Of a DNA stretch of 64,000 nt, positions 1 to 43,604 are shown piece after piece. Below the pieces are notes generated by a model. That model did no database searches and was not told the origin of the DNA. It saw only the letters and a list, made by a program, of their open reading frames with translations. The translations under genes and the position numbers were made by a program. The DNA comes from Oculina patagonica. Taxonomy: Eukaryota. Location of the stretch: NCBI RefSeq assembly GCF_052425735.1, contig NC_135759.1, positions 29,760,001 through 29,824,000 on the forward strand, in the 5' to 3' direction. How positions within the stretch are numbered: the stretch's first letter is position 1; the number at the start of each line of letters is the position of its first letter.

Positions 1-130
1 GGTTACTGGTATTTACTAGAGTACTAAGAATCATATTTAATGGTGAATTCTTTGGGCAAAATGTAAAATGAGGTTATTTTAGGCGCACGCTTGTCGACCT
101 TCGCGCGTTACACACCGATATCTCGATTAA

Positions 131-553: not shown

Positions 554-694
554 TTAAAAACTGTAATCAAGAGTGATTTGCATTCAAGCTGATCATAATA
601 ATTACTGGCAACCAAAGCCAAGCCATTTTTATTAGTCTACCTCCCTGTTTTTCTGAATATAATCTATGCGTATATGCCATCACATGGCACTAAC

Positions 695-3562: not shown

Positions 3563-3788
3563 ATGATGTACTCACCAGAAAAAGGAGTGGAAGAGAATGA
3601 TGGTATGTAAACAGTACATGGACATTTTAAACTAGCTAACTAACCTAAACTTGTATTAACATAATTGTAACACTCGTGCCTGCCCTTTTTAGCTCTATAG
3701 TTATTTCAGGCAACCAGACCCCTAATTATTTATTTATACTTGTCAGCAATTTTTTTTCTTTTTGTAAAATATTAAGGGGTGAATAAAG

Positions 3789-3819
<31 letters not shown>

Positions 3820-6800
3820 CAAAGTTCTAACGATTAAAAAAACACACTAAGGTTTTCTTTTTGGAATATCTCATTCTACCTAAGACGTCATAAATTCTAA
3901 CAAATCCACCGTATTGGATCCTCCATCTTAGATAATAACAATTTAAATTATATTTTTGTAATATCCAGCCTACAATTGGATAATATAATTAATTTGTGTA
4001 ATTGATTTCAATTGACAGATCTGATGAGCAAATTAGAATCTGACGACTTCGATGACATTAATGACGCAATCACTCCCCAGTCCCTTGGAAGATGCAAAAC
4101 GAATGTTTTATTTACAGCATTTAAGGTCTGAGTTCGAACATGCAAACAATAAAATAATTGTAGCTCCACTCATGAGAGTACAGATGTACAAGCCGTTTGA
4201 ATCAGCATGGTTAAAAGTTATGTTGTTAACACTACATACTCATTAAAGCAAAGATTCATTCGCGCCGTAGACTAATTGGCTCTTCTATAAGTAATGTAGA
4301 AGCTTTAAGCTTTCGTTACGATCTTGAACCCAAAGTATTGCCAAATTCCAAAGGATCATTAGCAGATAATGTAACACTGATACCGGGCTATTGTTGGTGG
4401 TTTCTGTGTAAGTTGAACTTCCCCTCACTATATCCAGAAAAATCCTGAGGACTGGCATTTTCTCTCATAATACTTATTTTCAGGTGAGTGGGTTCCTTCA
4501 GGACAAAGCTCGGCAAGAACGACCAGATGTAGAGGAGCTAAAGAAGTTAGCAAGTTCTGTGGACGAGTTTACAACAAGCTTGATAGATCCACTGAAGTCG
4601 GACAAACCATCACGGGAAGCCTTTGGTGATTCTCTTGACTCTATTATAGACAAGGCCATTGAATATAAGCAGATGAAGGTAAATATACCGACATATATAT
4701 TTAAAAATAACGCATTATTACCCTGAATTGCAAATAATGCTACGTTTTCATAAGGATGGCAGCAACTTGTTTTAACCATGAAGGTTTCCTTTAACTGTAA
4801 ATTCGGAACTTTTGGATCGTTACTTTTAGATATTATTTAAAAAAAAAAACATTCACCCAACATGATTGCGTGGAAGGCCAACGAATGGGGATAAAAGACG
4901 TACTACTGTATAAATCAATAACTCACCTTCCATTTCTGGGGGCGCGGTGACCGAATTGCGGATTGTTAGTGCGCTGGGCTCCAGATCGAGGAGTCTGGTT
5001 CAAGCTCAAGCCGGGGGTCACTGCGTTGTATAATTGAGGAGGACACTTTACTCTCATAGTGCCATTCTCCCCCAGGTGTATCGTGTGCCGGTGAATTTAA
5101 TGCTTGAAGGTAACCCTGTGATGGACTAGCACCCCATCCAGGGAGGCGAAGAAATACTACTAGTCGCTTCATGCTACGGAAATCTAAATGAGCTCCGGCC
5201 TGATGGGCAATTATGCCCGTAGGCAGACTTACTAAACCTTTTCTTTTGCATTTCAGTTTATTTCTCATCCTGTTGTATACAACTTGCTAGACAAGCGTTG
5301 GATAGGACAGTTCTATGCTTGGAAGTCTCACTACTGGAGTTGGGCATTCATGTGGTTTTGGTGTTTCTTGGAGGTGATTCTGTTTCCGTTCATATTCGCC
5401 ATTTTCTACGTCAGGGACAAGGCAAGAATATGGATAAGGAAATATCAAGGTTTGAAACACTCTTTTGCTTCAGATATAACTATTTCTCGATACCAGCAAA
5501 ATCTGTACATGTAACTTTAAGTTACCGCCGCAATTTATAGTTGTGTCTAACAGGCACGATCATTTCGAGCAATGAACAACATCGCAAGGAGGAGCTCGTG
5601 TAAAACTTTCGTTTAGCCTCGTGGAAAAATTAATGCTCATGACCTAAAATAAAGTGCCAATGGACATTCTTTATCTATTTTATCCACGATGAATCATTGA
5701 GTATGAGAAAAATAAAGATCTTGAATGCATTGCCCGCTCGAAACCTTTGAAAAAATGAATTTTGTGTTGAAAGCGAAGTGTTAATTCTCCATGGTTGGTC
5801 CGCCTGTGCCGTCTTACAGGTTGTTTTGGATCAAAATAAGTACTGTTCGTAAGGCAATTTAATTCATAGTCATACTTTATTCTTCGTTTTGCATACAAAC
5901 CAGTGTCAGCATTGATATTTCTTTTGAGAACCGTTTTTTTAATAATTTTTTTTATAGATTACAGCATCTGCTTCATCCTTCATACCGAGGGAAAAACTGG
6001 AGACGAGAGCTTTAATCTTATGAAGCAATGCATGTCGCGAGTCATTCATCAGTGCGGAGTCAGATCTGTTAATTATTGCGTGATCAGCAGTATGCAAGGA
6101 GAAGCATACCAGCATGTGGCATTCCAGAGGCAATTTGATAACGAATGTTCACTGGTAAAGAAAATTCTAGCGATGGAAAGGGACACTAAACGAACGCGTG
6201 CGACAATTGACGATGACGTTCAAGAAGCATTAATCGTCTTTGAGGGTCAGACTGCAAGAAAGAAGGTTTGTTCTTATGAAAGTAAACGTCAAACACATTG
6301 ACAACAACAACAACAATAATAATCAGAGATTAACAAATAAATGATGGACTTTTAAACTGAAGGAATGACAATGTCTTATTACACGGTCTAATAATGCGGG
6401 GTTTTTTTTCTTGTCGACAGATTCTTTTCTTGTTTACTAATGATACGTCAAGTTTGCACGGCCAGGCTCGGTTAAGACACGGAAAATTAGAATTTGATGC
6501 CAAGAAACTTAGAAAAGAACTGGAAGTTAAAATTGTGCCCATCGCCATAGGAGATAGTGCTTCTGTGGACGACCTAAGGGACATTGCTTCAATACCCGAC
6601 CGTGCTATCTCAGGCAGAGTGAGCGAGGATCCTTCACATTTGGGACGTAAACTTTTAAGAGGTTGGTTCGTGCTTTTAGTCCTCGTTAAAAATTAAAATG
6701 TTGCACTTAAATTTAGAATACTTGTTTATACATTAAAGAGATACGAAAACCGCAAAAAAACCTGTAGGCTGGATAGACACTTTAAGTCTTCCTCCAAAAG

Positions 6801-9800
6801 AAATTTAGTATAAAGCACTTTGTATCATGTATTTTTATTTTGGGGAAAATATTAAACTGAAAAATGAAATGAAATATTTATCTGGCAGGAACTGCAATCC
6901 TATGATGTTTTTTTTAAATTTTTAAAAGTGCATTATGTTTATAGTTTTACTTTTTTACTTTTTTTAAGAAGAGCATTGTCGCCGTTGTTACACAAGGCAT
7001 GTTACTATTACTTCAGAAATAATAAAACATCTTAGGGCGGATCTAGGGGGAAAGGTGCAGGGGATGGCACCCTCCCCCCTCCCTCCTGAGATGACCTGTG
7101 GCTTTCTAAGACTTTCTAATACTGGTATTATTCAGAAAAAAATGTGGTTTATTGGTGAACCCCTCCTAAGAAAAATCCTGGATCGGCCCCTCAACTTACA
7201 ATCAAGATCTCATTATTTGCAGATGTCAATGTAACCTTGTAAAAAAATAGTTTAAAATTTACACTCAATTGCTGTTGCTGTTTTCTTTTAATAGTGGTTT
7301 ATGGAGCCAGTTTTCGTGGTAAGAATTATTTTTTTTTATCTTTTATCCCTGTATAGATAAAATTCACTCAAACAATTTATAGAATTTTTTAATTACAGAA
7401 ACATGAATTTTCTGTTTTCAGTGCTATTTCCTCCTATTTAATTATAATTTAAATAATTGCGTGATTCCCAGTCAACACTTTCTGTATGTAACGTACATAA
7501 CAATATCGATGAAATGTCATCGCGTGTATCATAAATTAATTCATTTTTGACTAAAACGTTTTAACCCTATTCAGACCGGGGGGGGGGGGGGCTTTTGAGG
7601 CCCGCGCTCTCTTTGAACTTTTATAACTTTTTTAAGATTTAACCAAACGCTGCCAAACTTTCTGAGTTTTCCTAAAATTTATCTGGCAACAAATTGTTAG
7701 GGATGGATGATGTGTCAGGAACTTGACATCACCATGGCAACGGCATTTTGACAGGCATGTTTTCCCAAATTTGTAATTTTGCGTGTTTCTGTTAATAAAA
7801 ATCAACTTAAATGGCATTATTTTTACATTTTTACGGGTTTAAAGCACATTTTTATTCATTTTGAGTACTAAGCAATGATTTTGGGTGGTTTTCTGGCATT
7901 TTGGAAAAATTTTTAAATCCAAGATGGCGGATCCAAGATGGCGGCTGTTTTGACATCATGATGTAATTGTCACGTGATGTGACGTCACCATCCCACGTGA
8001 CGTATACCAAAAGAAAGAGTTTTGGACGTACAATACATCCTATAAGTTTCATGGTGATTCCTTAAGTATTCTGGAAGTTACATAGGGGGGCTTCCGAAGC
8101 CCCCCCTCCCCCCGGTCTGAGAAGGTCCAAAAAAAGCCCGGTCTGAATAGGGTTAACACTTCACATTGAAGAAGTATCCGTTCATTGCTATAAAATCTTC
8201 TCCTTTCCTTAAAAAGGTTTTACCCTTGCATGATTTGCCTTATTAACCCGTGTAATAATCGATAAAAATAACAGCAATATCACTACTGTTAATTTCAGAG
8301 CTGTACCTTGATTACTACGTTACGCCGTACTTCATATTTGCAAGAGACACACTGAGCTACTTTTCCCTGCTTGGTCTTCATGTTGCCATATGTCTTTCCC
8401 CATCGGTCAATACCTTCACTATGGTGGAATGGGCCATTCTGGTGTTCTTTGTGGGCCGTTTCGTTGTGGAGCTCGATCAGTGCTTTAAGAGTGCACCTAA
8501 GGAGTTATCAGCCTCCATGCAACAACAGGCAGCAAGACCAACACATCTGAAAGTCAAGTCAATGGCATCACGAATGCTTAACTCATATCTAAGGTACGTA
8601 TGGTAACAGAAGAATGCGGAACATAGCTCAAAAATGAATTAATTAGGAAAGAAAAGTTTTCTTAAACTTAATGATTGGAGAATGCATCAACTTGGAAAAT
8701 ATGTTTTCCGTCTTAACCTTGATTCCAAAACGCTTTCTTTTCAAATCAAATGATGTAATCGTAGAAAGCTGCTAGGTTTAGAGCAGACTCGCTACGTTAA
8801 TTATAATTTTTTAAATGACGAAACCTCTCAGTCTTTTGAAAGTTCGTCTTCAGGTCAGCCATATTTTAAATTATGGATAACAGAAGCTCACGATGTCTTA
8901 TTAACCCTATTCAGCCGGGTTTTTGTTCAAAAGCCTGAGTCAACTATTACATTTAACACTATTTAGCAGAACCAAGTGGTCGACTATGATACTGTTTGGC
9001 TCACGATCCAAACAGGCACCTACTTAAGATCCAATGAAAATCCCGGCTTAGTAAAGTTTTATAGCCGTAACGTTATCATGATAGGAAAGTTCAATAAGTG
9101 AAGAATTACGTATAATGTAATAATTTATCTCCTAGTGATCGTTGGAATGTGCTGGACTTGATCACTCTTGTTGTCTACTTCATCACATTTATATTGCGTG
9201 TGATCACGTGGGGAATTTCCACACATGTGGCTGGAAACCGGCTGCTGGTTATTGCGCAATACTTGTATGGCCTCAACGCTACCATCTTGACTTTACGGGT
9301 GTTCGGGAGTCTTTTGGAAGCTAACAAAGGGACAGGGATTACCCACATTGCTCTCGTCAGCATTGTCGAAGACGTGGCGATCATATTTATCCAGTTTTTT
9401 GTGGGGATATTAGCATGCTCGTTGGCGATGACCAAAGTACTAATTGCCGAGCACTCTTATACGGGTGTTGACGAGGAAGTTGCAGGGTAAGAAAATTTTT
9501 TTTTTTACGAAAACCTATCCGCCTTCAGTGCCTTTTCCATATTCCTTGGTCTAACGGTTTTAGATTTTCAACGAATATTAAATTTTGACAAGCTACATAA
9601 CGGTTTTCTGCTGCCCAAGCTTAGCTCGTAAAGTGAATAAAACTGCTTTTTTAAAGATATCTCCGCAATGCGGTGATTCTTGATTCGATGAACAGAACCT
9701 TTCCTGCTTCATCATGACTGAGATAAGTCTTAGTAAATAAAGGTTTAATACTAACAATTTTCGTCATCACTGGCCTGAACTATGAACCGATTGCAATATC

Positions 9801-12800
9801 TTTCTTCTCTCAACAGAAAAGAAACTGAGAAAAATAAAACATTACGCTTTGGCAAATAAGACAATTACAATTTAATTACTGCAATCATAACTTAATTTGT
9901 TAATACTTTAATAAGTGATAATAATTTAATTTCTTTGTTTTTTTTTTATCTCAAGGCTATGCAGTGGCACTGGAATCTCTTGGTAATTTGATGTATTTTA
10001 AAAAATATATAATTCATAAGCGATCGAGCGAAGCATACTTAGGAGCTATTATTCCGTTCTGTTTGTAGGTTATACCAATAGTATTTATTTCTCACAGAGA
10101 ATTTTCCTTATTTGGTGGGCCACTATGATTGCAGCCCACGACCGACCGACCAGCTGACCGACCGACCGACCAACAAAGAAATTATTGAACAACGAACAAA
10201 CAATACGAGTAAATGCAATAAACAATCGAACAAACAAACCACGCTGTCCTTCTCTTTTTTGTTAGTCCCTTTTAAGCTAAATCTTATAACCATAAAACAA
10301 TCGCGTCACTTGCGGTGCTTGGCTTATTCATAAGTTTAGTATTTAGTAACGAAGTTTCTGCAGATAATTATTATCTCGTACTAACAATTATCTTTCCTTA
10401 TGATTGACTATTAATTTTTCTTCCGATTCAGTTGGTGGGAAATTGTTAAGCACCTCGGTTGGACACTTCTCGGCATTGCAGACGTGGAGCCCTTCACCTC
10501 GAGTGACTCGTTATCTAACAACATTGCGCAAGCACTGTACGCTGGCTTTATCATAGCAGCGCTCATTCTTCTGGTCAATATGATGATCGCTGTTCTATCC
10601 AGTACTTACGAGCGAGTAGAGGTAAGGGAAAGGCCTGACACCACTTTAAAATTTTCTCTCTTTTTTATTTCTTCGTTACGTCACAGTGAAACGTGTACCA
10701 TCTACATTATAGCGTCGGCAAGTGCCAAGGTCACTCTTAGCTGATTGGGGGGGGGCATTTTATTTCTGTTATTTATTCTTAAGCACATTTTCAATTTTTT
10801 TTTAGTTTTTTTTTTACGTTGTGTGGGCGTAAGGGTAATAACAAACGGGAAATGAATAAAGGAAATTCATGTCCCCGATGCTCTGCAAACAGTTAGAATT
10901 GTAATCTTTTTGCCTGGCTCAAAAACTTTTATTGAAAAAATGCAGTATGTAGTATTTTTTGTGGTCATATTTCGCTCCTCCGTTTTAAAGGGTAGATATG
11001 GTGCTCATTGCTTATGGAAACCTTAAAGGAAGCTTTGATTCTTTTGTTTTAGTTTCTACTGGGATATTACTTTTTCTCCGGCGATGATCAAATATACAGT
11101 TAACCCGAACTAATGTTTTTTGCCTTGTAGAGCAACTCGCTTAGAGAATGGTCTTTGAGAAAGGCCATCATTATCCGAACATTCAGCAACTATCATCCTA
11201 TTCCAGTACCATTGAATTTGATATCCCAGTTTGTAATGTTATTACTGAAATGCTTCAAAGCCTGTCGACGTAGATATGGCTCTCGCAAGTGTTACAGTCA
11301 AATATCTGACTCCGGAATCACATCCGAAGACGATGCAGCTAGTGTAGAGAAGGTAAAAAGGCTGTTTAACAAATATTTTCTGGTTTAGTGAGTAAATAAC
11401 ACAGTCAACTCACTCTAAGACGGACACAGTTGGGACCGACTCCAACTGTCCGTATTAGAGAGGTGTTCGTCTTATAGGGAGTTTAGTTACAGCGAAATGA
11501 CTGAAAAACGGCAGTGGCAGGACCAACAGCAGGTGTCCGTCTTATAGAGATGTCCGCTTAGAGAGGGTTGACTGTATACTAAAACAGTGGATAGCGTTTT
11601 TGGCGCGCACTGATTAGCTACTCAAACTCTAATTATACTTTGCTATTCACCTCCGAGCATCGCGCGCGAGAAAATTGTGACCTTTGACAAGAATAAACTA
11701 GTCGAAAACCGTCCTTTTTTTTTTGGGCTATATTATCTCACCGTTTTAGTATATACTAAAACAACAGTACTATTCACCTCGAGAGTGTCGGTGGCTAGCG
11801 GTGGATATTTACATCGCCGCTTCGCGGCTCGGTAAATCCTCCACTTCGGTGTATAGTTGTTAAATATTCATTATTAGAAAAAATAAGAGAAATGCGGTTA
11901 ACAATCCATATTAAAGATTTCTCTTTTAAAAAAATACATGTAGTCATTACTGCATGGGTAAGCGACGTAAATGCTCAAATCCGGCCTGACTACATTAGCG
12001 TCTATGGGTAAATTCTTTTCTGTGATTTAGGATGATTTTTCCAGACAATTGTCATGATTAGAGGCTCCATGAAGAAATTCTTGATTATGACCTTATATTC
12101 ATTGCTCTTAGGACAGAAATTTGGAGAGTATTCTCGATAAGCTGAAAGCCGTGTACTTTTCAACGCATGGATCCTCGTTCCCTTTAACAGGTAACAAATA
12201 CATTTTTGATGATGATGATGATCGTTATTGGGGGGGATTATTATTACTATTTTCAAAAACTCATTAATGTTGGTTGGGGGGGGGGGGGGGGGGGGGGATA
12301 TCATTAAGAAAATACAAATGAAATTAATGTTTAATGAGTGTCTCTATATCTGATAAAGATACAGCTAAATTTTGTCCAATTTTCTTGGCCAAAATAAACC
12401 AAAATCTAAATATTAGTGCAAATTAGATTGAAAATATCTACATCAGATGTTTTTGAAGCCGTTCAATAAACTCGCAGTTCGTGCTATATCGCGTCTAAAA
12501 CACTCGGCTGCGCCTCGTGTTTTAAACTTGATAAACCACTTCTGCTTGTTTATTAAACATTCCTTTAACCTGCAGCTTATAGTTTTTTTTTTTCTGTTTT
12601 GTCCGTCCACATTGTAATCCGTCGGTGACGCAATCTGCAGGCCTGACACTAGTATACATAATCACACACAAGGCGCCCTCCAAGGCTGTGGCAGATTTCA
12701 AGTGATTTCAAAAGCATTACTGACGACAGTATAACTATGTTTGTAATGTCTTTAAGGGCCTATGGTTGAGTTCCAGCACAGTTTTTTTTAATTTGGTGGT

Positions 12801-15800: not shown

Positions 15801-18800
15801 AAGCTGCATCCACGGAATAACTTTTTGCTGTTTTATCCGATAGAGCTCAAACTTTGCACAATGATAGAACTTTTTATTTCAAACAATCATATGATTTTTG
15901 TTTTTTGAATTTAACGGTTTTTGGCGGGAAAATGACGTCACAGTGCCTAAGTCAAATTTTTTTTTCTGTTATGGCACAAAAAGTACATGATTCTGAAAGA
16001 ACTCATTGAGATAAAGTGAAATGCGAAAAAATTATTGAAAAAGCTCAATCCGCCTTGAAGATATAAGGTTTGGAAATTTGAATTTTCCGCCATTTTGTTA
16101 CTATTTTTAGAACATTTACAAAATTCAGATCTTTATATCTTCAAGACGGATTGAGCTTTTTCAATAATTTTTTCGCATTTCACTTTGTCTCAATGAGTTC
16201 TTTCAGAATCATGTACTTTTTGTGCCATAACAGAAAAAAAAATTTGACTTAGGCACTGTGACGTCATTTTCCCGCCAAAAACCGTTAAATTCAAAAAACA
16301 AAAATCATACGATTGTTTGGAATAAAAAGTTCTATCATTGTGCAAAGTTTGAGCTCTATCGGATAAAACAGCAAAAAGTTATTCCGAGGGTGCAGCTTCG
16401 GGCGCTCTCCTGGCCCGGCGTGTTAAGCTCGGCAAGGGGCCCTTTATATAAACAAACAAGAACATTGAGAAGCTTGAAAAGCTTAAAATCGGGCGCTTTG
16501 CCTTGAAAGGCAGGGTTCAGTACAGCAGAAACCACGAAGCAGTTACTTAAGTAGCACTCAGTCCGACTGTGTTTGTGTAAGTCACAGGGCTTGCATGAGC
16601 TGTATTAGTGTGCATAATATAATATCTAGAACGTTGTCGAGATTGCATTATTACTTAATGACATGATGGTTTCAATTTATAAATGTATCTCACACAATAC
16701 AAATAAACGATTGAAGTAGACGACTAGACAATGTAAAGTTTTAAGACTTAGCAAAGTGCAGTGTATTGGTAATACTGTAAGGTGCGGTTTCGCCTGAAGG
16801 TCGTGTGCTTTTCGGTATTTTCCAGGCATTGCACTTTGATGGGACAGTACTACAACTGTTTACCGGGGAACTACTATTGTCAAGAAAATGATCACAACTT
16901 GTTGATGAATGATTGAACATTTGTTTCATACCATTACTGTAATAGCAATTGATAAAGGCTTTTAGTCCTGAACCAAAGTATAAGGACTGGGAAATACTGA
17001 AACCCATTATCAGCCACCTTAAACGGAAATATCTTGTTGGTGTTTCAAGGAATCCAAGGAAACTTCACTCATCCCATGTATCTATGTATTGCGGTATTTT
17101 GTAATTTTTTGAGTGATTTTTGGGGATGTTTGGCAGGTGATAGTTTTTTTAAAAGAATTAGTAAAATTTAGACAACTAAGAAATATTGAAAATTTAATGT
17201 GAATTTAACATTGGAATTTGAAGTTAGAAATTGGCAGACGGACACCAAACAGTCCCGTGACATCCTGGAGTGTTTTTGCATGGGGGTCAACTGTGTGATG
17301 ATGTTTCCATTTTTTTCTTCAATCCCCACTGATAAAGAACTGTTGTTGGTGTTATGTTGGTGTTATCACATGTCAAGCCTTTAACAAGGTATGAAAGAAC
17401 ACAAGGATTTAAATTATTCTGGTGCTCAATTTTTGCGTAACTAAAATTAATGTTACTCAAATTCCTGATGGATTCTGTCTTAAACTGTTACGAGCTTAGT
17501 ATTTCCAAATTATTGCATGTCAATGTAAGGCAAGACAAGACATGCCTTGGTTCTTATGTAATTCACTTAAAAACACAAAAGATATTGACTATAATTTTGT
17601 CTGTGCTATGGCAATTCACAGTGGGGTGGTCTTGATGTATCTTTAACTTGTAGACTGGACTGGACTAGTAAAACGCGGACTAGTAAAACGCGGACTTGTA
17701 AAACGCCTCTAGACACTTCGAATTCCTTGGCCACAATCATCTTACGGCTCTCTTCAATACATAATGTGTCAAAAAAAACAGTAACCTTAGAAAGAAGTCA
17801 GAAGCAAATAAGGTCGAAAGACCGAATTTGAACATATAACGGCAAATGTTCTAATGTCACGAACGTAGGAGTCGTGTAGGCCCGTCACCTTTATTTACCA
17901 CATACTGCCCCCAAATTAAAACAGTACCCTCAGAAAGAAGTCAGAAGCAAATAAGGTCGAAAGACCGAATTTAAACATTTAACGGCAAATATTCTAATGT
18001 CACGAACGTAGGAGTCATGTAGGCCCGTCACCTTTATTTACGATTGACTGTTGATTTCTGGACGGGCCCCGTTCTACCTCGTGCGAGCAATACAAACGAC
18101 TGCACTCAACAGACGTCAAGTAGTGGAAAGAAAGAAACATATGCACACAACTCATAGCATCAATCCCGTTGTTTTAGTAGGGGTTTGCAGAACGAACATG
18201 TGCTATACTGCAAAAACATCTCCACGCTAAAACAGACCATAGAGTGCTCAAAAAAGCTAGAAATATGCCGTCGAAGAAACACACAAGAGCTTCAAACACA
18301 AATTGTTTCGCTCGCTAAACCGTTTAGTTTTATCCGATTTACAAGCGCTTGTTTTACAAGTCCGCGTTCTACAAGTCCGTGCTTAACAAGCCCTCGTTTT
18401 ACAAGTCCGCGTTTTACAAGTCCGCGTTTTACTAGTCCTCGTTTTACAAGTCCGCGTTTTACTAGTCCGCGTTTTACTAGTCCGCCTTTTACAAGTCCGC
18501 GTTTTACCTGAGTCCGCGTTTTACTAGTCCGCGTTTTACAAGTCCGCGTTTTACTAGTCCGCGTTATGGTGGATTTCCACTGACGCGTAATTTTTTACGT
18601 GCGTGAAGAAATTTAGAGACAATGTATGAATGGCTTGCGTAAACGTTCACGCAAGTCGTTCATACGTTGTCTTAAAATTTTTCCCCCACGTAAAAAATTA
18701 CGCGTCAGTGGAAATCCACCATTATACTAGTCCGCGTTTTACAAGTCCGCGTTTTACTAGTCCGCGTTTTACTAGTCCAGTCCAGTCCTCGAAATACAGT

Positions 18801-33101: not shown

Positions 33102-34037
33102 ATGGCTACTTCACCAAAGGGAAAAGGAGCTTCCGTCGTTAAGGAAGTCGTAGACACGATAAACGGGTTAGGAATATTTGCAGACGATCACAAATTTCTT
33201 TGCCGTGTTGCATGGGTCGAGTCAAAATATGGAGAGGCGCCTGGTACATACAGAAGCGGTTACCATGGAGGTATTTGGCAGGTAAACGCCTCTTTTCTCA
33301 AGTTGTCCCTTCGTACGTAATAGTTCGTAGGTAGTAAGCTTTATTTAAGCCGATACTTCCTTGACGTAAAACTTTATTCTTATTTCTAACATAAAACGAG
33401 ACCTGGAAGGCAAAAGAATTTTTCGCAGGACACCAAGTCTATGTGTATGTGGAATTTTGCATTATTTATTTCTTTGCAGCCTTTCCAACCTTACTCGTTG
33501 TTTACATGCCGTGATTAGATATGCCGAGTGGAAAATAAAGAAATGAGGGTCGGCGAAAGTTGGTTTTGCACAATCAGTCTGTCACTGGTTAATAAAATCC
33601 CGTACGTTGCGCATTCTATGAAGTAATCGAAAGCGAAGATATTTAATTTATATGCCAGAAAATTACTTTACCATAGGATATATCTACCCGGGTCCTCTCC
33701 GGGCTGTCAGTTTATACGACATTTCTTTATTAACGCTTAGGTTGACAAGATTGGTTACCGTGAGACTGTTATACAGCAAGGTCTGAAGAAGTACCGCGAC
33801 CAAATTCAAGCTAAACTCGGCATCGACTGGACCGAGACTGAATGGGAAGACTTGGAGAAACCGCTGTACTCTGGACTAGCTGCTCGGCTGTTTCTTGCAA
33901 GAATTTCCGCTCCTATTCCATCAGATCTTCCTTCTCAAGCTCAGTACTGGAAAACTCACTACAACACTTCAGCTGGTAAAGGAACTGTGCAGAAGTTTAT
34001 TGAGGATGTGAAGAAGGCAACAGGTTGTGCTGCCTAG
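33102..34037 (+). CDS. Lysozyme-fold (GH23/SLT-like) protein, copy A, 158 aa, no signal peptide; exons 33102-33281, 33741-34037
   Basis: MATSPKGKGASVVKEVV...FLCRVAWVESKYG...YHGGIWQ|VDKIGYRE...KPLYSGLAARLFL...YWKTHYNTSAGKGT...GCAA*. The ES, GIWQVD and YN motifs occur in lysozyme-superfamily order; phase-0 GT-AG intron. Confidence 0.85.
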
Positions 34038-34933
34038 ACTAGACAGGATCCGTACTGTAACGTCTTAAAACTATAAATAACACAGCTCGCAATTCAAAAG
34101 GTTTAGTCAGTTGTCATGAAATGCAATTCAAGGTTAAATTACCAGAATTATTCTTTTCCTAAGAGGTCTAGCCTTAACGTAGTCTAAGGTATTTGTTTAA
34201 AGAATAATTGTAAAATGAAACACAAAATGAAATAAACTTTGTATACGCTTGAAGGAAATGCTTTGACGTTTCATTAGTTTCCGGTCACGCCATATTTTAG
34301 AAAGCTGTCGACCTTAATAATGCTATATCTAATCAACAGTCTGATATTGCTATGGCCTTCTTCAAGTATCAAATAAACTTCAGCATACATCCTTACCAGA
34401 AACAGCTTATTGCCAAATATGCTTACAACGCTATCAATATCTAGAATCTTACTATGGAACGTATGATATAAAACCGAAAGACATTTTTAAAAGCTTCGTT
34501 GAAGCAATAAAAATAATCTGACAAAATGTCCAGAATCGAAAGACAATAAGATGCTAGTTCTTGCAGCCATCTTGCGCATGTATGGCCGTTTGTTATCGTT
34601 GGGCACCACTCTAATTCAGTTGAGTTAAGGTTAAATTCTGTTCGTTATAAAGCGTGAATTATATGCGGAAATTGAAATACACAAAAGTTCAGGGGATGTC
34701 TTATTATATTACTTAATGTGTGGTAAGCTGCTTACCTTGAATACTGACGAAAACCGCAGTGCGGTCTGATATATTCGAATATTATTAAACTAATTCAAAC
34801 GAGAAAATCATTTAGTCGGTAAGTCAATTAATAAATCCAACTGAAATTTTATGTTTTTAATACACATGCATGTCACGCAATGCTGTTTTCCTAAATAGTG
34901 TTTGGTCTCATACGTACGGTAACTGAGACGACT

Positions 34934-35292
34934 TTTCGGTTTCAAAACACATCATCCCGTGGAAACTGAAAGTATCTCGGGTCATGCTATAGAAACAAAG
35001 ACACAACAAAACAAAACAAATAAAAAATCAGAGAACTCTTTTGATTGGTTGATTTGGTTGAATGCAAATATCTAAACCGGAGACCTGTCTGCATGATCGG
35101 ACCTATTTTAGCAACACGTCATTCCGAAACTGAAAGATATCACTGGTCCGACTACTCCAAACAAACCAATCACTTTGAGTTCTGAATTAAATCTAAATAT
35201 GGTAAAGATATCGATGTTATCGTAAAACCAGTTCTACCGAAAGAAACAAGTTCATTCCTATTTGAAGAAACTTGCGAGCAGAGGAACCAGAG
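34934..35292 (+). promoter_or_regulatory. Promoter and non-coding first exon of copy B with three IRF/ISRE-type GAAANNGAAA motifs
   Basis: TTTCGGTTTC 34934-34943, GAAACTGAAA 34962-34971 and 35126-35135; CCAAT and TATA-like block 35164-35205; donor GTAAG at 35293. Confidence 0.5.
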
Positions 35293-36584
35293 GTAAGAAG
35301 CATGCATTTAAAATCAATTAAGATCGAATCATGTGGAAACTAGAAGGTTAACCTTTCCTATTTTGTACTTTTTGCCTACAGCCGTCCCGGCGGCTAGTTG
35401 CTCAGTATTTTGGAAACGATTTCTGTATCTAAAACATTTATATACCTTCCGCTTGTTCGCATACTGTCTTCTACTTTTTACCGAGATATGAATATTTCAG
35501 TGCACATCGAAAAGAGTCAGACTATATAAATCTTTATTGTATACGTATGCGAATGACCAGCAAAGAGCGAGCCCACACAATTAGTCCCGAACACTATACA
35601 TGACATGCCAAAGTAGGGCCACCACTTCAAATTTAAAACTTTACTTAGATGGTAGGTTTGAGTCTTTCGGTTTTCCGTACGTTTCACCCAAGTTGATTTT
35701 CACAGATAATAGTAAGGTCACTGATTTGTCCCTATTTCAAAACATCTTCCAAAATGCATAGATTAAATTAGTTCGCACAATTGAAACCGGGCAAGATACA
35801 TGACCTTTACTTCCGTGTTTGAGAAAGCGCGTGGCTTTCATATGGTGATAATATCTATTTTAGCATGGTACGTCACTTTTTTCTTGGTCCAGAAAAATAC
35901 ACGACTTTCTCATTTCGTAATCCTCTTTTGCAACTAACAATCATAAAGTCAAAACGTTTACTCAAGTAGAATTCCTTAGGGGATCGATTCCAACCATCGG
36001 AAACTGAAAATAAAGAAATCCACGAAATGCACAGTAGCTCCTACCGGTTGTTCTACTCGACTGTGAAATTATCTAACAGCGCTCTATTTTTTTCTAAAGA
36101 CGCTTAAACGCCCATCCGATAATTGTTCCTTCGAATCGATCGAAATATGACAAAATTTTTGCTCTCGGAATGAGAAGTTATTAAACGGATGAGCAGGTGC
36201 AGAGAAATAAACTGTCCCTTTAATTTTAATCCTGTGTAAAAGATTTTTGTAATTGTGTTTTAAAAGGTAGGTTTTTGTGACATTCGAGAAAAAAGTGATG
36301 AGGAGGTATCTTTGTTATCGTTGTTCAATAATAACAATTTTCCGCATCTAATTCACTTTCAGAACACTGCCAGTTAAGTTATAAGTTATAATTAAACTGA
36401 GGCAGTGAACGTAAATAAAAATCAAACATAAAGTTGGTCTGAACTAGACTTCCTAAAGTGCACAGTTTTTCCCGCAGAAGCACATTAAAGACAACAACGG
36501 CTGCAGCAGCGACAGCAATAACAACAACAACCGACTAAATAAACAGAACAGTGACAGTATTTTTTTGTCTTTCCCTTTCAGACA

Positions 36585-37647
36585 ATGTTTCTGGCAGCGG
36601 TGTTTGTCGGTCTGGCCGCTCCGTTTTTTCTTGGATTAAGTATGGCTCGTGCTAGTCCATACACACCAGGAGATAAAGGAAACGCGGTAGTTACGGAGGC
36701 CGTGAACATTATCAATGGCTTGGGAATATTTCCAAATGATCACAAGTTCCTCTGCCGTGTGGCCTGGGTTGAGTCAAAATACGGACAGGCATCAGGTACC
36801 TACAGGCCGGGTTATCATGGTGGAATTTGGCAGGTGAAGATTCTTAGATTGAATTATTATATTCATGATTCCTGTTTCATTTGTTGGGTAAAAAGGGGGT
36901 TAATGAAGATGCTTTGTCGAAAGAAGGTGCTTATTTTGGGAAAACTCACATGTTTTTTCGAGACTGCCATGTCTTATCTTATTTTATCTTATCTTATCTT
37001 ATCTTATCTTATCTTATCTTATCTTATCTTATCTTATCTTATCTTATCTTATCTTTTCATATCATGTCATGCCTTGTCATGTCGTGTAATGTCATGTCAT
37101 GTTATGTCACGTCACGTCACGTCACGTCATGTCATTTCATTTCATGTCATGTCATGTCATGTCATGTTATACTATGTTTTTGTAATCTAACTACGTATAT
37201 CACCATCATTTTATTTATTTGCCACTTCAGAATTACAATTACAATTGAAATTAAGTAAAAGTGGGGGAGGAAAAAAAATTGGGGGGGCCCGATAATTTTT
37301 TTGGTTACGGGTTAGTGCTGTTAGTTTACACTATCTTTAAACACTTATAGGTTGACTACATTGGCTATCGCGAGACAGTCATCCAGCAAGGTCTGAGAAA
37401 ATACTGGTTAAGAATCAAGGAGATACTTGGCATTGACTGGACCCAAACTGAATGGGAAGACTTGGAGAAACCGCTGTACTCTGGACTGGCTGCCCGGCTG
37501 TTTCTTGCCAGGCTTTCTGCTCCCATTCCATCAGATCTTCCTTCACAAGCTTGGTACTGGAAGACCTACTACAACACTGCAGCTGGAAAAGGAACTGTGC
37601 AGAAGTTTATTGAAGATGTGGAACAGGCAACAGGCTGCGCTGCCTAG
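36585..37647 (+). CDS. Lysozyme-fold protein, copy B, 181 aa, predicted secreted; exons 36585-36833, 37351-37647
   Basis: Hydrophobic leader MFLAAVFVGLAAPFFLGLSMARA; same motifs and intron position as copy A. Confidence 0.88.
36972..37168. repeat. Compound pentanucleotide microsatellite (TCTTA)n-(TGTCA/CGTCA)n in the copy B intron
   Basis: Visible directly; it produces the spurious LILSY/CHVMS tails in the ORF track. Confidence 0.95.
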
Positions 37648-39847
37648 AAGAGAAGGCTTATATAGCTAGGTACACCTAGCTACTAACCAGTAAATATTGG
37701 TCGATGTTTTTATCCATTAATAGGTAAATTTTTTGGGTGTTTTTTTTTTTTTTTTTTTATTAATAGGTAACTTTCATATTAATTAATTCGCTAACTGTAA
37801 CCAAGTGGATCGGCTAGATGAGTATGCTAATGAGTATTTTTTCATTTAGATTAACCTATGTTGTTTTGTTTCCTTGATTATTCAATCAAGATTGTTCATT
37901 CGACAAATCAAACTAAAATTTATTTTCCTACTTTTTTACCCTTTAATAAATAATAAAAAAGAAAAAATATGGTAGTTTATGTTCTGTCAGTAGTTAATAA
38001 GACTTCATTCAAAGGCACTGTTTCAATCATGTTACTCAGTTCTCCTCTTTTAATGGGACTCAAAAAAGTTTTATAAAGGGAGGCTACGCTCCGAGTTACC
38101 CTTTCACTTTTGTACAGTAGAAAGAATGCAACACTTTTTGAAAGTTTGCACTTGAAGAACGCCTTAATAGACTATCGATCAGCGATAAGGTGCGTCTATT
38201 CGAATATTTTAAAAGGCCTTTCCAAATACCGAAATGACACTTTTCATTGTCCCTATATAAACCCCAGCTCGTGAAATCCCTACCCTTTTATATACTTCCT
38301 GCCTGAAAAAGAAACCCGTTTCAGTCAGAATCTTCCATACGGTAGGGTTAGGGACTCCCACCCCTCTCTCGGGGACCTCCTAAAGTCCTTTAACCCCCCT
38401 CCCCCTCCGCATGTGCGAATATTCTCCATTTAGGGAGTGTTCATTATTTATTGTTGGGGGGGGGGGGAATTTTTATGGCTCCGCCTTCGATATCTTTATC
38501 TTTATCCCTCGGACAACACAGACTTGACGAACAGACTTGACCCCCCTCCTCAAGGGGGACCTTACAACTTCCACCCCCCCCCCTCAAATATTTTATAAAC
38601 AATGCAGTATTAACGGAGGTATTAACATTTAGAAGAAAACAAATTTAACAATCATTGAGCATGCGTTTGATATGAGATGCCAGATAGCCAATGAGGCGCC
38701 AAGCGCCAAGTTGGCAATAACTTTCTCATATCCAACAAGCGCAAGTGGAAAAGTTGTTTTATCGAAGACACCCAATGATTTGCAATATTTGTGCTCCCCG
38801 GTTGTTCTCACTGACGCATACACCTACCATATGTGTGGCCAATGGTATGTGAGCTCATATACCATGACCTGTAAACCAATACAAACTCAGGGATTGCGAC
38901 ATAACCTGGCTAGTTAGATATAGAAAAGACCTCGTTAAGAGTTTGACTTTCTCACCAAGTGACATAAACAGATTATGTACCCTTATTATCAACTTAATGA
39001 TAAAAAATTGGAACTGTGAAAAAATTAACTCTGGCAACACACTTGGTTTGTCACTGATCTTAAAAAAAATGCTTGGCCCATTCAGTACTGGTAGACATCG
39101 ACTGGTTTATTTATTTATTTAACTTGTTCCCTTAGTCACACATGTATACATTTGTATCAGGCTAGTTAGTTTGTTTGCTAGTTCACTTCATCAAATTAAA
39201 ACAAAGGAAATCATAACCGTGAAGGAAGTTTGGAAACCCGGCCTTAATTAGAATAGATTTTAAAGATTTTATTTCTCCGTTTACTCCGTAGTTTTTGTTT
39301 CGATTGAAAAGATATATCAAACACTCGAGACAGGCCATCCAAACACCTAGACGTCAAAAATACTCCGCTGCGCGTCGCATTTTCAACTCTTTCTCGGTGT
39401 TTGGATTGATGAAACACTGCTCCGTGTTTGATAGACAGTTACTTCCAAATTACTCGACTAACGCTTGCTTGAACCACCAAGGAAAGAGAAGCCCCCACCC
39501 CAAGACATAAATAATGAACACCCCCTTTAAGTGTACAGCATATTGTAAATGTCATGACGGCGTACGTTTTGATATGAATCTGGGTTATGGAATGAAAATG
39601 CTAAGATTTTTTTGGTTTGCCCGAAAGAAAAATGTCCAATATAAGCGGAATCTTAAATACCAAATACCCAGCCGGTATATCTGAACGGAAAATGAATGTG
39701 CTTACCGTATACGCGTATTTACCCAATACTGGAAAACACTAGTTCTTCTTCAAAACACATTAATTTGTCGTCTATATATTCTGAAAAAGTACACAATGAA
39801 CATACGAAGAGTATTTTTCATTCTCTATGTACTGAAACTATCAGCAG

Positions 39848-40174
39848 GTCGAATTATCGTGAAAATGTCATTCAACAATGTTTGAAGAAATACCGCGACC
39901 AAATTCAAGCTAAACTCGGCATCAACTCCCGGGCATCATGAACTGTACCGCGACTGAATGGGAAGACTTGGAGAAACCGCGGTACTCTGGACTTGCTGCT
40001 CGACTGTTTCTTGCCAGAATTTCTGCTCCTGTTACCTTAGATCTTCCTTCTCAATCTCAGTATTGGAAAACTCACTACAACACTTCAGCTGTGAACGGGA
40101 TTGTGCAGAAGTTTGTTGATGATGTGACGAGCGCAACAGGTTGTGCGGCCAGTCGCCTGAAAACTATTAATTAA
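39848..40174 (+). pseudogene. Lysozyme-fold copy C: last exon only, frameshifted duplicate of copy A
   Basis: KKYRDQIQAKLG and KTHYNTSA are A-type; a 17-nt insertion after GGCATC shifts the frame (TGA at 39939-39941); GKGT is changed to VNGI; the normal stop is lost; no ES-motif exon found upstream. Confidence 0.85.
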
Positions 40175-40315
40175 CTTCAGCATATAAATAGTGGCCACAA
40201 TCTTATTGCCAAATATGTTTACAACGCTGTCAATATCTATCATCTTACGGTAGAAGTGTATTAAAAGCCGAAAGAAATTTAAACTTAGCGAAACCATATA
40301 GTTGCAAAAAAAAAA

Positions 40316-40591
40316 ACACTTGTCAGGTTTGCATTTGAAGGACACTTGTAAGTCTAATTTAGGTACTGCGTTAAGGTCATTTCTTTGTTTGTATAAGCCT
40401 GGATTTTATGCGGCAATTAAAAGACGCAAATGTTGGGATGTCTTATATTATTTACACTTGTCAGGTTTGCATTTGAAGGACACTTGTAAGTCTAATTTAG
40501 GTACTGCGTTAAGGTCATTTCTTTGTTTGTATAAGCCTGGATTTTATGCGGCAATTAAAAGACGCAAATGTTGGGATGTCTTATATTATTT
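40316..40591. repeat. Perfect 138-bp tandem duplication
   Basis: 40316-40453 equals 40454-40591; the paralogous region near 34550-34715 is single-copy. Confidence 0.9.
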
Positions 40592-41012
40592 GCTCTGCGG
40601 TACGCTGCCACCTCGAATACAGACGTAAGCCGCCGTCCGTTCTGATATACTCGATATTGTACTAATTCATTCGTGATAATCGGTCAACCTGTAAGGTTTT
40701 GGTATTTATTGCATTAATTTAATTAAATTATGTCCTTAATAACATGCATATTACTAGTGATAGTGAACGTCAATGCTGTTTTCTTAAATTGTGTTTGGTC
40801 TCAAACGGTAACCGAGATGACTTTTCGGCTCCAAGACAAATCATCCCGATTTGTTCTGAAAGTATCTCGAGACATGCTATAGAAACAAAACATAACACAA
40901 CAAAACAAATAAAAAAAATCCTAAATGTTGATATTGAAACGAAACCTATCTGACCCGTTTCAGCAACGCATCACCCCGGCACTGAAAAATATCACTGATC
41001 GCCACTCCAGAC

Positions 41013-41147
41013 TAACCAATCACTTTGAGATCTCAATTAATCTAAATATGGTAAGGTTGTTGTTTTAAAACCAGTTCTACCGAAAGAAACGAGTTCATTC
41101 CCTTTATGAGCTGTTATTGAAGAAACTTGATAGCAGAGGAATTAGAG
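41013..41147 (+). promoter_or_regulatory. Core promoter and non-coding first exon of copy D
   Basis: AACCAATCACTTTGAG...TCTAAATATGGTAA...CCAGTTCTACCGAAAGAAAC...AGAG|GTAAGAAGCAT aligns with copy B 35164-35303. Confidence 0.55.
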
Positions 41148-42586
41148 GTAAGAAGCATACATTTAAAAGTCGCTTGAAATCGAAATTAAAGTTAATTCAG
41201 TTTAATTATCGAGCGTGCAGTTCAAGCAGCAATACTTAATGACATGTTTTTAATACCACACTTGGTGGTTCGTTTTCGAGGAAATTGATTGAGGCTTATA
41301 ACAAGGAATTGTAACTGAATTATTTTATTTTATTTTATTTTCCTTTGCAGACTAAATTAAGTTATATTAAAAAAATAAATAGGAATTTGCAGTTATCCAC
41401 AGAGTGGTTCTGCATCCACCGTTTCCAAATTGAATCAAGATGTGGAATCTTGTACTGTGGAAACGATTTCTATTAGTAGGAACGTTTGAGGTGCATTTTC
41501 GCATCAATTACTGTCTTTTATTCTTACCAAGATATGCACATCTCAGCTAGTGCACAAGAAAAAATGTCAGGCTGTAGAAATCTGTTGTAAACTAAAGTGA
41601 CCAGTAAAGAACCAAATAAGCCTCCCGAACACTAAACAGTGCATGCGAAACTAGGGCCACCACTACCTACTAACTTTCATTTTAATTTCAACAAATCATT
41701 GAACAACTTTACTCAGATGGCAGGTTTGAGTCTTTCAGCTTTCAGAACGATTCATCTAAAGGTTCAAGTTGATTTTCACGGATAATTGCAAAGTTACTCT
41801 TTTACTTCCTTGTTTGAGAAAGTACATGACTTTCATGTGATGATAATATTGGTTGTAGCATGGCATGTCGCTTTTTTCTTGGTGCAGAAAAAAAATGCAC
41901 GTCTTTCACATTTCGTATCAGGCCTCCTTTTCGATTATCAATTCTTCAATTCTTTAAGGGATCGTTCTCAGCCATCGGAAACTAAAAGAAAGAAAAACAA
42001 TCAACAACTATTCACCAAAGTAGAGGTGGTTAGTGGTTCGCGGCGAGGTGAATATCCACCACTAGCCACCGACACTGAGGTGAATAGTTGTTTTAGTATA
42101 TACTAAAACAGTGAGATAATATAGCCCAAAAGAATGATTTTTTTTACCAATTTATTTCTGCAACGATATACAATTTTCTTGTGCGCGTTGCTCGGAGGTG
42201 AATAGCAAACTAAAGGATATTCGGAGTTTGAGTAGCCAATCGGCGCGCGCCAAAAACGCTATCCACTGTTTTGTATATACTAATGTACACTAGCTCCTAC
42301 CCACTTAAATGTGAAATTATCTAAAAGCGCCCTATTCTTTTCTTTTAACTTACTTAAAAGTGAACCTATTCTAAACGCTGATTCGATAATTGATCTTTCG
42401 AATCAGTAATGGAAAATGTTTGCTCTCGTGAATAATCTCTATACAGAGTGGGAAATTATTAAACGAAGTAGCGGGTTGTCCACCGGCAGCGACATCAACA
42501 ACAAAAACAACAACAAAAACAACAACAACAACAACTAAAACTACAATAAACTGACGGGATCTTTTTGTCTTTCTCTCTTTCAGACC

Positions 42587-43604
42587 ATGTTTCAAAAAAC
42601 AGTGGTGTTCGTTGGCCTTTTCACTCACCTTTTTCTAGGATTAAGTATGGCTTGTACTGATCCATACACACCAAGAGGCAAAGGGAACGCCGTAGTTACC
42701 GAGGTCGTGAAAAGGATTAACAGTTTGGGAATATTTCCAAACGATCGCAAGTTCCTCTGCCGTGTGGCCTGGGTCGAGTCGAGATACGGAGAGCATCGTA
42801 ATACCTACAGGCGTGGTTACCATGGTGGAATTTGGCAGGTAAAGATATCACAGTTTAAGTCTTATTCCGTGTTCTAGGATTGTTGCTTTTCTTTGTCTTG
42901 TCTTGTCTGGGCGGGACTGGCACGTTTTACTGCGTATTTTAAAGGGAATATGTCGTGGCTAAATGTTTGCAAAGAAATTAATTATGTGATTCTAAATGAC
43001 AAAACCATAGCTTTATTTCAGCCAAATTTGTCTCCCGGGAGTATAATTTAATGTAACCGGCAGACAAGATAAACTTTGGAAACTGTTCCGCCGCACCATA
43101 TTTCAAAAACCCATATCATAATCCGTCTCAATCTTCGACACTTTTGGTCATCCGTAACTTCTTTTGCCATTTGGTGTGTTATTTAAATATTCCTTCACTG
43201 CTTTAAGCGGGTTATTTTATATATTTAAAAGAATTTGATGGTCATTTCCTATGCTTAAGTTTGGCTCAAATCCTTGACACGGTCCCTTTAAATGTTTATA
43301 GGTTGACTACGTTGGTTATCGCGAGACTGTTATTCAGCAACGCCTGAGAAGGTTCTGGAACAGAATCAAGGAGAGACTCGGCATCGACTGGACCAAGACT
43401 AGATGGCAAGACTTGGAGAAACCGCTGTACTCTGGACTGGCTGCCCGTCTGTATCTTGTCAGGATTCGTGCTCCTATACCGTCCGATCGCGATCTTCCTT
43501 CGCAAGCTCGGTACTGGAAGACTTACTACAACACTGCAGCTGGGAAAGGAACTGTGCAGAAGTTTATTAAAGATGTGAAGCGCGCAACAGGTTGTGCTGC
43601 CTAG
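42587..43604 (+). CDS. Lysozyme-fold protein, copy D, 184 aa, predicted secreted, strongly cationic; exons 42587-42838, 43302-43604
   Basis: Leader MFQKTVVFVGLFTHLFLGLSMA; VAWVESRYG, GGIWQ|VD and YWKTYYNTAAGKGT intact; many substitutions to Arg. Confidence 0.88.

Follow-up and report, generated by a model that had tools for sequence, protein, structure and literature searches.

A tandem gene cluster in Oculina patagonica

We analysed a 64,000-nucleotide stretch of the Oculina patagonica genome (NC_135759.1, positions 29,760,001-29,824,000 of the forward strand; hereafter the window), the DNA of which is eukaryotic, has a GC content of 34-44% and contains no N. The span from 33102 to 43604 within this window, which runs from the start codon of the first gene (g1) to the stop codon of the third (g3), harbors three intact two-exon paralogues and the relic of a further exon 2 (Table 1). 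Gene models were derived by tblastn of exon translations against the window and by direct reading of the sequence, and they bear out both the count (three intact genes plus one pseudogene) and the coordinates given in an initial annotation that had been made from the nucleotide letters alone. The cluster encodes three predicted all-alpha proteins of ~160 residues. They appear to belong to a family that lacks annotation and lies within the lysozyme-like superfamily, with GH23 enzymes as its nearest group.

Table 1. Coding exons of the three paralogues and position of the pseudogene relic, in window coordinates.
Feature	Position	Strand	Remarks
g1 (LOC144644013), coding exon 1	33102..33281	+	no leader at N-terminus; RVAWVES (candidate catalytic Glu-Ser), YHGGIWQ
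g1, coding exon 2	33741..34037	+	VDKIGY ... YWKTHYNTSAGKGT ... GCAA, stop; AG acceptor 33739-33740
g2 (LOC144644012), coding exon 1	36585..36833	+	signal-peptide-like MFLAAVFVGLAAPFFLGLSMA, then predicted catalytic-core motifs
g2, coding exon 2	37351..37647	+	phrog_3108 match, E 2.5e-12
Pseudogene, exon-2 relic only	39840..40150	+	two frames, 39840-39926 and 39938-40150 (tblastn, direct reading)
g3 (LOC144644015), coding exon 1	42587..42838	+	signal-peptide-like leader
g3, coding exon 2	43302..43604	+	phrog_3108 match, E 1.3e-15; mature protein strongly cationic, pI 10.2

Each intact gene is interrupted by a single phase-0 GT-AG intron (459-517 nt; 459 nt in g1) that splits a conserved motif between GGIWQ and VD. 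The spliced products of g1 (158 aa), g2 (181 aa) and g3 (184 aa) are 100% identical to RefSeq proteins XP_078359540.1 (P0385), XP_078359539.1 (P0152) and XP_078359543.1 (P0151), respectively, all three of which bear the name 'uncharacterized protein'. The paralogues share 72-85% identity per exon (tblastn E 1e-26 to 1e-64, well past chance), and the motifs RVAWVES, YHGGIWQVD and YWKTxYNTxAGKGT, as initially read, recur in all of them. A hydrophobic leader ending in LGLSMA opens g2 and g3, and no leader is present in either public gene model of g1. The predicted isoelectric point (pI) of the mature proteins rises from 7.9 (g2) over 8.8 (g1) to 10.2 (g3). Pairwise ratios of nonsynonymous to synonymous substitutions (dN/dS) of 0.14-0.32, at dS values of 0.43-0.89, argue that all three genes have been retained by purifying selection since old duplications.

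The two secreted-type genes also resemble each other upstream of their coding sequence: at 36500-36587 and 42492-42589, g2 and g3 both show a stretch rich in (ACA)n and, 3 nt before the ATG, a 'tttcag' acceptor, and the duplicated unit thus includes the end of a 5'-untranslated-region intron. Within the g2 intron (36972-37167), adjoining 5-nt microsatellites, (TCTTA)x18 and (TCATG)x22, generate long spurious open reading frames (ORFs) at 36585-37190 and 36881-37258. As for the pseudogene, its frame change reflects a net insertion of 17 nt around 39927-39937, the ancestral stop codon is gone, VNGI stands in place of GKGT, and no exon 1 for it was detectable anywhere between g2 and g3. The GenBank model KAL9984541.1 (257 aa; window 39938-43604) splices the relic ORF onto g3; RefSeq has g3 alone. 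Some 170 nt downstream of the relic, 40316-40591 consists of an exact 138-nt tandem duplication with two copies that are 100% identical.

The cluster is part of a chromosome scaffold of 46.5 Mb, where a TRP/YVC1-like ion-channel gene and a PRELI-domain gene flank it. Since these flanking genes are unrelated to it and no partner components exist at the locus, the initial label 'effector system' was an overstatement and we have dropped it: the locus is a tandem paralogue cluster and not a multi-component system.

Occurrence of the family in eukaryotes, bacteria and phages

The exon translations had no match in Pfam, NCBIfam or PDB sequences, in agreement with the earlier placement of the proteins outside the c-, g- and i-type lysozyme classes. 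For lysozymes of the c and i types (GH22), there was neither a Pfam nor a PDB sequence match, and no GH22 structure figured among the Foldseek matches listed. The Pfam domain SLT (PF01464) was not matched at its gathering score by any family member scanned, nor by the exon pieces; sub-threshold matches occurred in one of 124 eukaryote-type and four of 65 phage-type members (best E 0.005-0.011). Nevertheless, the family is large. An exhaustive phmmer search with coral exon 2 returned 978 representative clusters (50% identity), and a word-indexed profile search identified members in further corals (Orbicella, Acropora, Montipora, Porites, Desmophyllum), in the brachiopod Lingula, the echinoderms Acanthaster, Patiria and Amphiura and the amoeba Willaertia, as well as in many metagenomic contigs. 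Across all sources searched, these proteins are named only 'uncharacterized' or 'hypothetical', and a literature search by family, gene and protein identifiers and by topic found no paper on them. The family is unannotated in every resource that was searched and would rank, inside the lysozyme-like superfamily, as a new variant at family level.

Certain relatives are multi-domain proteins, which combine the domain with VWA, MAM, LDLa, EGF or CBM_14 modules; the Peritrophin-A chitin-binding domain CBM_14 (E 5e-6) is contained in the multi-copy relative P0003, one of the ten multi-domain relatives scanned. On a clearly metazoan metagenome contig (L170:6001-7949), a VWA ORF lies 700 nt downstream of an intron-less domain copy, and the two are probably exons of one gene, as in the Amphiura protein P0256. 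Besides, signal peptides are missing from 31 of the 124 eukaryote-type proteins, g1 among them. This leaderless form (g1; P0153, P0161, P0162, P0217, P0234, P0245) has been kept from corals to brachiopod and starfish, beside secreted forms.

Phages and bacteria likewise contain the family. The exon-2 products of g2 and g3 matched the PHROG family phrog_3108, the function of which is unannotated (Table 1); exon-1 pieces alone did not match it. Gp54 of Klebsiella phage phiKO2 (YP_006634.1) falls into phrog_3108 with an E value of 3.7e-53 and was also found by tblastn, together with Pseudoalteromonas phage B8b gp26 and others. Pattern scans recovered no fewer than 538 viral contigs and 140 loci of bacteria or prophages, mainly from marine Gammaproteobacteria and Campylobacterota, and a profile search of phage and bacterial proteins yielded 1,979 clusters (90% identity); the 120 clusters listed from that search bore only 'hypothetical protein' names and no Pfam domain. 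Family members are plentiful among marine phages and the prophages of coral-associated bacteria, e.g. Endozoicomonas. A phage resemblance of the YWK..YNT..GKGT tail, which the initial annotation had suggested, was thereby confirmed, as YWKxYYNTxxGKGT is present in phrog_3108, in phiKO2 Gp54 and in >500 viral contigs. Phage and animal members have in common an invariant skeleton composed of E-[ST], a Gly four residues on, GxxQx[DE], an Arg, a Pro, YWKxYYN and GxG[TS]. In a Foldseek comparison, the model of coral g2 (see below) matched an uncultured-phage protein in BFVD with E 6.8e-9, a template-modelling (TM) score of 0.77, a root-mean-square deviation (RMSD) of 1.8 Å and 31% identity.

Some phage and bacterial proteins of 420-940 aa carry the domain at their C-terminal end, and their N-terminal parts gave no informative annotation except for one sub-threshold YD-shell match. 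The latter concerns a 795-aa protein from a metagenome-assembled genome (MAG) of Verrucomicrobiae (L079:1778-4162), in which a YD-shell/Rhs-like part precedes the C-terminal domain, an architecture that would suit a polymorphic antibacterial toxin with the domain as its toxin tip.

The genomic context of phage members is informative as to their role. In phiKO2, the late promoter is followed by Gp53, the family member Gp54, Gp55 and an ORF overlapping Gp55. Gp53 (101 aa) is holin-like, with about three predicted hydrophobic or transmembrane segments and a basic C-terminal tail. Gp55 and the overlapping ORF have been catalogued as i-spanin and o-spanin, respectively (Kongari et al. 2018, PMC6139136, supplementary file 5), and the o-spanin ORF begins with a lipoprotein signal (lipobox LAGC). 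No lysozyme, amidase or transglycosylase is annotated in the rest of the 51.6-kb phiKO2 genome. With a holin-like gene before it, spanins after it and no other lysin annotated, Gp54 seems to occupy the endolysin slot, a deduction from gene position that applies to the phage members only and not to the coral genes. When the loci were dereplicated to 66 clusters at 60% identity, 60 of them with proteins of at most 260 aa, holin was the sole recurring annotated PHROG function among 96 immediate neighbours (three holin families, four members each). Small membrane ORFs made up 37% of the ORFs within two genes of the family member, as against 17% of farther same-strand ORFs (Fisher p 1e-7), and at least one lay within two genes at 42 of the 60 loci. 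A cruder first test on ORFs near phage members had revealed weak enrichment only (holin-like 22% vs 12%, lipobox 32% vs 14%); it was superseded by the PHROG scan of neighbours and the stricter adjacency test.

To place the coral proteins, we computed an unrooted maximum-likelihood tree of 190 rows (quick IQ-TREE, LG+C20). All named eukaryotic sequences fell into one 126-row group (SH-aLRT 89), apart from most phage and bacterial rows, and the coral sequences into a clade of 18 eukaryote-type rows with strong support (SH-aLRT 100). Bacterial MAGs contribute no more than three rows (L054, L059 and L071) to the 126-row group, and two metagenomic rows lie across the split. The three MAG rows are binned as Rhodospirillaceae or Deltaproteobacteria and encode a eukaryote-type RIAxxES...GGxFQVD; they may represent mis-binned eukaryotic DNA or else a bacterial lineage near the donor or recipient. 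A phylogeny with prokaryotic and phage members, as proposed at the outset, sets the eukaryote-type group apart but, being unrooted, does not show the donor. Transfer from phages or bacteria into eukaryotes is the more likely direction, because the phage genes are embedded in lysis cassettes, the eukaryotic occurrence is patchy and the intron is variable, being present in corals and absent from the metazoan contig L170. The eukaryotic genes would then descend from an ancient phage or bacterial gene transfer, followed by intron gain and tandem duplication.

Given the abundance of the family in marine phages and Endozoicomonas prophages, one might doubt that these are real coral genes and suspect contamination from bacteria or phages, or else an insertion of very recent date. 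We reject this explanation as next to impossible: each gene has a GT-AG intron, the locus is embedded in a chromosome scaffold between ion-channel and PRELI genes, its GC content equals the 36-40% of the surroundings, orthologues exist in the five other coral genera named above, and the coral sequences group in the well-supported clade of the tree.

Two further features of the window lie outside the cluster. The upstream neighbour (about 1-10000; ORFs 6394-6696 and 9149-9490) encodes the 1204-aa TRP/YVC1-like channel, which has a weak VWA match; that VWA is also the commonest fusion partner of the domain in other animals is probably a coincidence. An ORF of repeated FTSPR units at 18185-18511, with a strong negative GC skew (-0.21), is probably a minisatellite.

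Relationship to GH23 enzymes

The 124-sequence eukaryote-type profile retrieved nothing credible among PDB sequences. With the 65-member phage/bacterial profile, in contrast, the three best-scoring of 177,635 PDB sequences were g-type lysozymes, in the order ostrich, black swan and goose (E 0.013-0.021). The profile also matched two more g-type lysozymes and one GH124 enzyme, a member of the same fold class, and a mixed profile repeated this ranking, the HMMER E values of goose-type lysozymes spanning 0.013-0.044 overall. In the HMMER alignment, the invariant Glu of the family falls on Glu73 of goose lysozyme, and GxGLxQVD on GFGLMQVD. When aligned by hhalign to 13 E. coli SLT sequences, built from the five paralogues MltE, Slt70, MltC, MltD and MltF, the family matched over ~43 columns with P 1.7e-4 and a probability of 49.5%, its Glu on the catalytic Glu; against the single MltE sequence, Glu again met Glu, yet without significance. 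A protein search seeded with MltE recovered only close EmtA orthologues (at least 73% identical) and was poor as a diverse SLT profile, and hmmsearch of the resulting MltE/EmtA profile over all fetched phage and bacterial loci detected no further SLT proteins. The commonest weak Pfam matches of individual phage and bacterial members were to Phage_lysozyme2 (6/65) and SLT (4/65). The GH23-like core suspected in the initial annotation, ES followed by Q, was in this way recovered by two programs, by HMMER on Glu73/GLMQVD and by hhalign on the catalytic Glu of MltE and Slt70.

The family-wide alignment points to the same residues. The Glu is kept in 188 of 189 members, and both the following Ser/Thr and the Gln in all 189; from Glu-Ser/Thr to the invariant Gln there are 20 residues, in the order of ES...GLMQ. 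Two residues beyond this Gln (Q+2), 187 of 189 members have an acid, namely Asp in 123 of 124 eukaryote-type and Asp or Glu in 64 of 65 phage-type sequences. Goose lysozyme has Asp97 at this position, which is occupied by K, M, V, I or T in the five lytic transglycosylases of E. coli. The C-terminal part is harder to equate. The family has an invariant YYN...GxG, initially taken for the AYN motif of GH23, but full-length HMMER alignments place its GRAxYWK on the C-terminal ARAQYYKQH of goose lysozyme, and not YYN on AYNAG, rendering the former equation doubtful.

The 124-sequence alignment served to build an AlphaFold2 model of g2, which comprises eight helices (predicted local distance difference test, pLDDT, 93.2; predicted TM score, pTM, 0.84), with E63-S64 at the end of helix 55-64 and Q83 20 residues later. 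A second model, of a phiKO2-type protein, reached a pLDDT of 96.2. Foldseek found no significant match of the g2 model in the PDB; its top neighbours were MltE (TM 0.40-0.42), Slt70, MltF, GH19 chitinases, GH124 and GH134. Those of the phiKO2-type model were phiKZ gp144 on top, a Ralstonia GH23 chitinase (TM 0.49-0.52, prob 0.9), MltE, phi6 P5 and Tse3. GH23 enzymes thus head both searches, at TM 0.40-0.52, E 0.3-2 and RMSD 5-10 Å, so that the lysozyme-like fold anticipated in the initial annotation is suggested by the ranking, although the matches themselves are weak (for the most part TM 0.40-0.50, E > 0.3).

A candidate muramidase family and its known counterparts

Collectively, we consider the coral proteins to be non-canonical GH23-like peptidoglycan-cleaving enzymes of phage or bacterial ancestry, from a family common to putative phage endolysins, and put the probability of this reading at roughly 0.68. 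The Glu at the helix end (E63 in g2, followed by the invariant Ser) would serve as general acid on the beta-1,4 bond between N-acetylmuramic acid (MurNAc) and N-acetylglucosamine (GlcNAc) of peptidoglycan, and the GGIWQVD loop would form the floor of the substrate groove. Because of their signal peptides and the cationic charge of g3, g2 and g3 would be secreted antibacterial or digestive muramidases in the coral, and g1 would be a leaderless form of the enzyme.

Several points speak against this proposal. Every single link to characterized enzymes is marginal, including the fold match to solved GH23 structures, even if all of these lines converge on one superfamily and one catalytic residue. 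Enzyme activity is a prediction for every member, and the putative endolysin role of the phage members is deduced from gene position. The unrooted tree, with three MAG rows inside the eukaryote-type clade, does not establish the direction and number of transfers. A leaderless form is unexpected for a peptidoglycan enzyme; in g1 and a quarter of the eukaryotic members, it is hard to square with an attack on extracellular bacteria, and the simple secreted antibacterial role initially envisaged is therefore a poor fit. Finally, the fusions to VWA, MAM, LDLa, EGF and CBM_14 could point to a binding or chitin-directed role.

The alternatives differ in substrate, in catalysis and in chemistry. GH23 enzymes accept both peptidoglycan and chitin, and the eukaryotic proteins might act on chitin or chito-oligosaccharides, like GH23-type chitinases, in fungal walls, prey cuticle or the animals' own chitinous matrices. 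The best solved structures for the phage-type model indeed include the chitinase of Ralstonia sp. A-471 (3w6c/3w6e), GH19 chitinases also appear in the fold searches, and relative P0003 carries CBM_14. We nevertheless regard this as improbable, given that the sequence profile matches goose-type lysozymes and not chitinases, that CBM_14 occurs in just one of the ten multi-domain relatives and that the phage members are encoded in lysis cassettes whose Gram-negative hosts offer peptidoglycan as the sole relevant substrate. An equally improbable option is that the animal domain is a non-catalytic module that binds glycan or peptidoglycan for pattern recognition or adhesion. Fusion partners such as VWA, MAM, LDL-receptor-A and EGF are typical of extracellular adhesion and recognition proteins, a quarter of the eukaryote-type members are leaderless, and the enzymatic role is deduced from sequences and models. 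However, lysozyme-like proteins without catalysis, alpha-lactalbumin and similar, usually lose the catalytic residues, and here 123-124 of the 124 eukaryote-type sequences retain Glu, Ser, Gln and Asp, and the paralogues are under purifying selection.

If the coral proteins do cleave peptidoglycan, it may be asked whether they do so as hydrolases or as lytic transglycosylases that, like MltE and Slt70, leave 1,6-anhydroMurNAc ends with the same substrate and fold. The latter draws on the closest solved folds of the coral model (MltE, MltF, Slt70), on the lytic transglycosylase phiKZ gp144 at the top of the phage-model search and on the hhalign core alignment to the E. coli enzymes, of which MltD has a GIWQ variant. 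We think it the less likely of the two, although a possibility to be reckoned with: the acid at Q+2 coincides with Asp97 of goose lysozyme and is absent from the five E. coli lytic transglycosylases, and hence favours a hydrolytic, g-lysozyme-like mechanism, and the best sequence matches are hydrolytic g-type lysozymes. Asp97 of goose lysozyme has been proposed to position a water molecule. The conserved Asp of the family (D85 in g2) may do the same, in which case the enzyme would be a hydrolase and not a lytic transglycosylase. The early suggestion that the Asp of QVD denotes a hydrolase thus fits the conservation pattern, without being proven by it.

Corals possess a greatly expanded repertoire of cytosolic NOD-like receptors. 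A more far-reaching scenario, which we offer tentatively and deem rather unlikely as a whole, is that marine invertebrates and some protists hold a fifth, unnamed class of animal lysozyme, derived from an unrecognized phage endolysin family and existing in two conserved forms, secreted and leaderless. The cytosolic leaderless form (g1, with orthologues from corals to starfish) might then process intracellular peptidoglycan fragments instead of simply killing bacteria, and these fragments might feed or quench the NOD-like receptors. Which lysozymes early-branching animals use is an open question (bioRxiv 10.1101/2024.10.06.616844), to which the family would add an unrecognized candidate class of muramidases in reef-building corals, echinoderms, a brachiopod and an amoeba. 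With it, a widespread 'hypothetical' phage protein, which N15-like prophages of Klebsiella and Salmonella and many marine phages apparently use as endolysin, would receive a name and a likely function, a matter of relevance to phage annotation and enzyme discovery. Besides, the coral paralogues (neutral, basic and leaderless) form a ready experimental series for studies of coral-microbe interactions.

How does the family compare with known systems? Its closest kin are the phrog_3108 proteins themselves (phiKO2 Gp54 and those of Pseudoalteromonas phage B8b and Pseudomonas phage PSA28, all annotated 'hypothetical'), which resemble the coral proteins in size (~150-165 aa) and in their invariant columns. 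Coral and phage members are ~25% identical, and the latter differ in carrying either ET or ES, in a GxGLxQ loop that varies more, in lacking introns and signal peptides and in lying beside holin and spanin genes. Among characterized enzymes, the goose-type lysozymes of GH23 (153L, 1GBS, 3WYH) are the best sequence-profile matches. Their Glu73-Ser and GFGLMQVD align to E-[ST] and GxGLxQ[VF][DE] of the family, the all-alpha lysozyme-like architecture is common to both, and their C-terminal ARAQYYKQH resembles GRAxYWKxY, whereas the C-terminal YYNTxxGKGT extension is family-specific. The canonical metazoan g-type clade GH23_I, which is found in Placozoa and Cnidaria (bioRxiv 10.1101/2024.10.06.616844), is a lineage different from the coral family. 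The family-1 lytic transglycosylases (MltE/EmtA, Slt70, MltC, MltD, MltF; PF01464) provide the top Foldseek matches of the coral model and align Glu on Glu, the spacing from ES to Q is similar (18 residues in MltE, Slt70, MltC and MltD, 20 in the family), and MltD also has GIWQ; yet the structural match is weak, and these housekeeping periplasmic enzymes, neither phage nor animal, lack the acid at Q+2 and have other C-terminal halves.

Several GH23-like lysins and effectors, i.e. phiKZ gp144 (3BKH), the GH23 chitinase of Ralstonia sp. A-471 (3W6C), phi6 P5 (4DQJ) and the Pseudomonas type VI secretion system (T6SS) effector Tse3 (4M5E), match the phage-type model with prob 0.87-0.91 and TM 0.46-0.52 and illustrate the use of this fold in phage lysis and antibacterial attack; at 13-19% identity and E > 0.3, they are members of families that are already annotated. 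With regard to ancestry, the coral cluster would be a further case of a wall-degrading gene common to animals and viruses of bacteria. GH25 lysozymes are reportedly antibacterial genes of prokaryotic or phage origin, as Metcalf et al. are said to have described in 2014, and Dae amidases are likewise said, with reference to Chou et al. in 2015, to be animal antibacterial genes of prokaryotic or phage origin. A third example is rusticalin, an animal antibacterial gene of prokaryotic or phage origin (PMC6339383); we rejected it as a relative, its peptidase domain being unrelated. All three parallel the coral family in that a wall-degrading enzyme is common to phages or bacteria on the one hand and to eukaryotes of patchy occurrence on the other, but they belong to unrelated folds and families and their functions are experimental or annotated.

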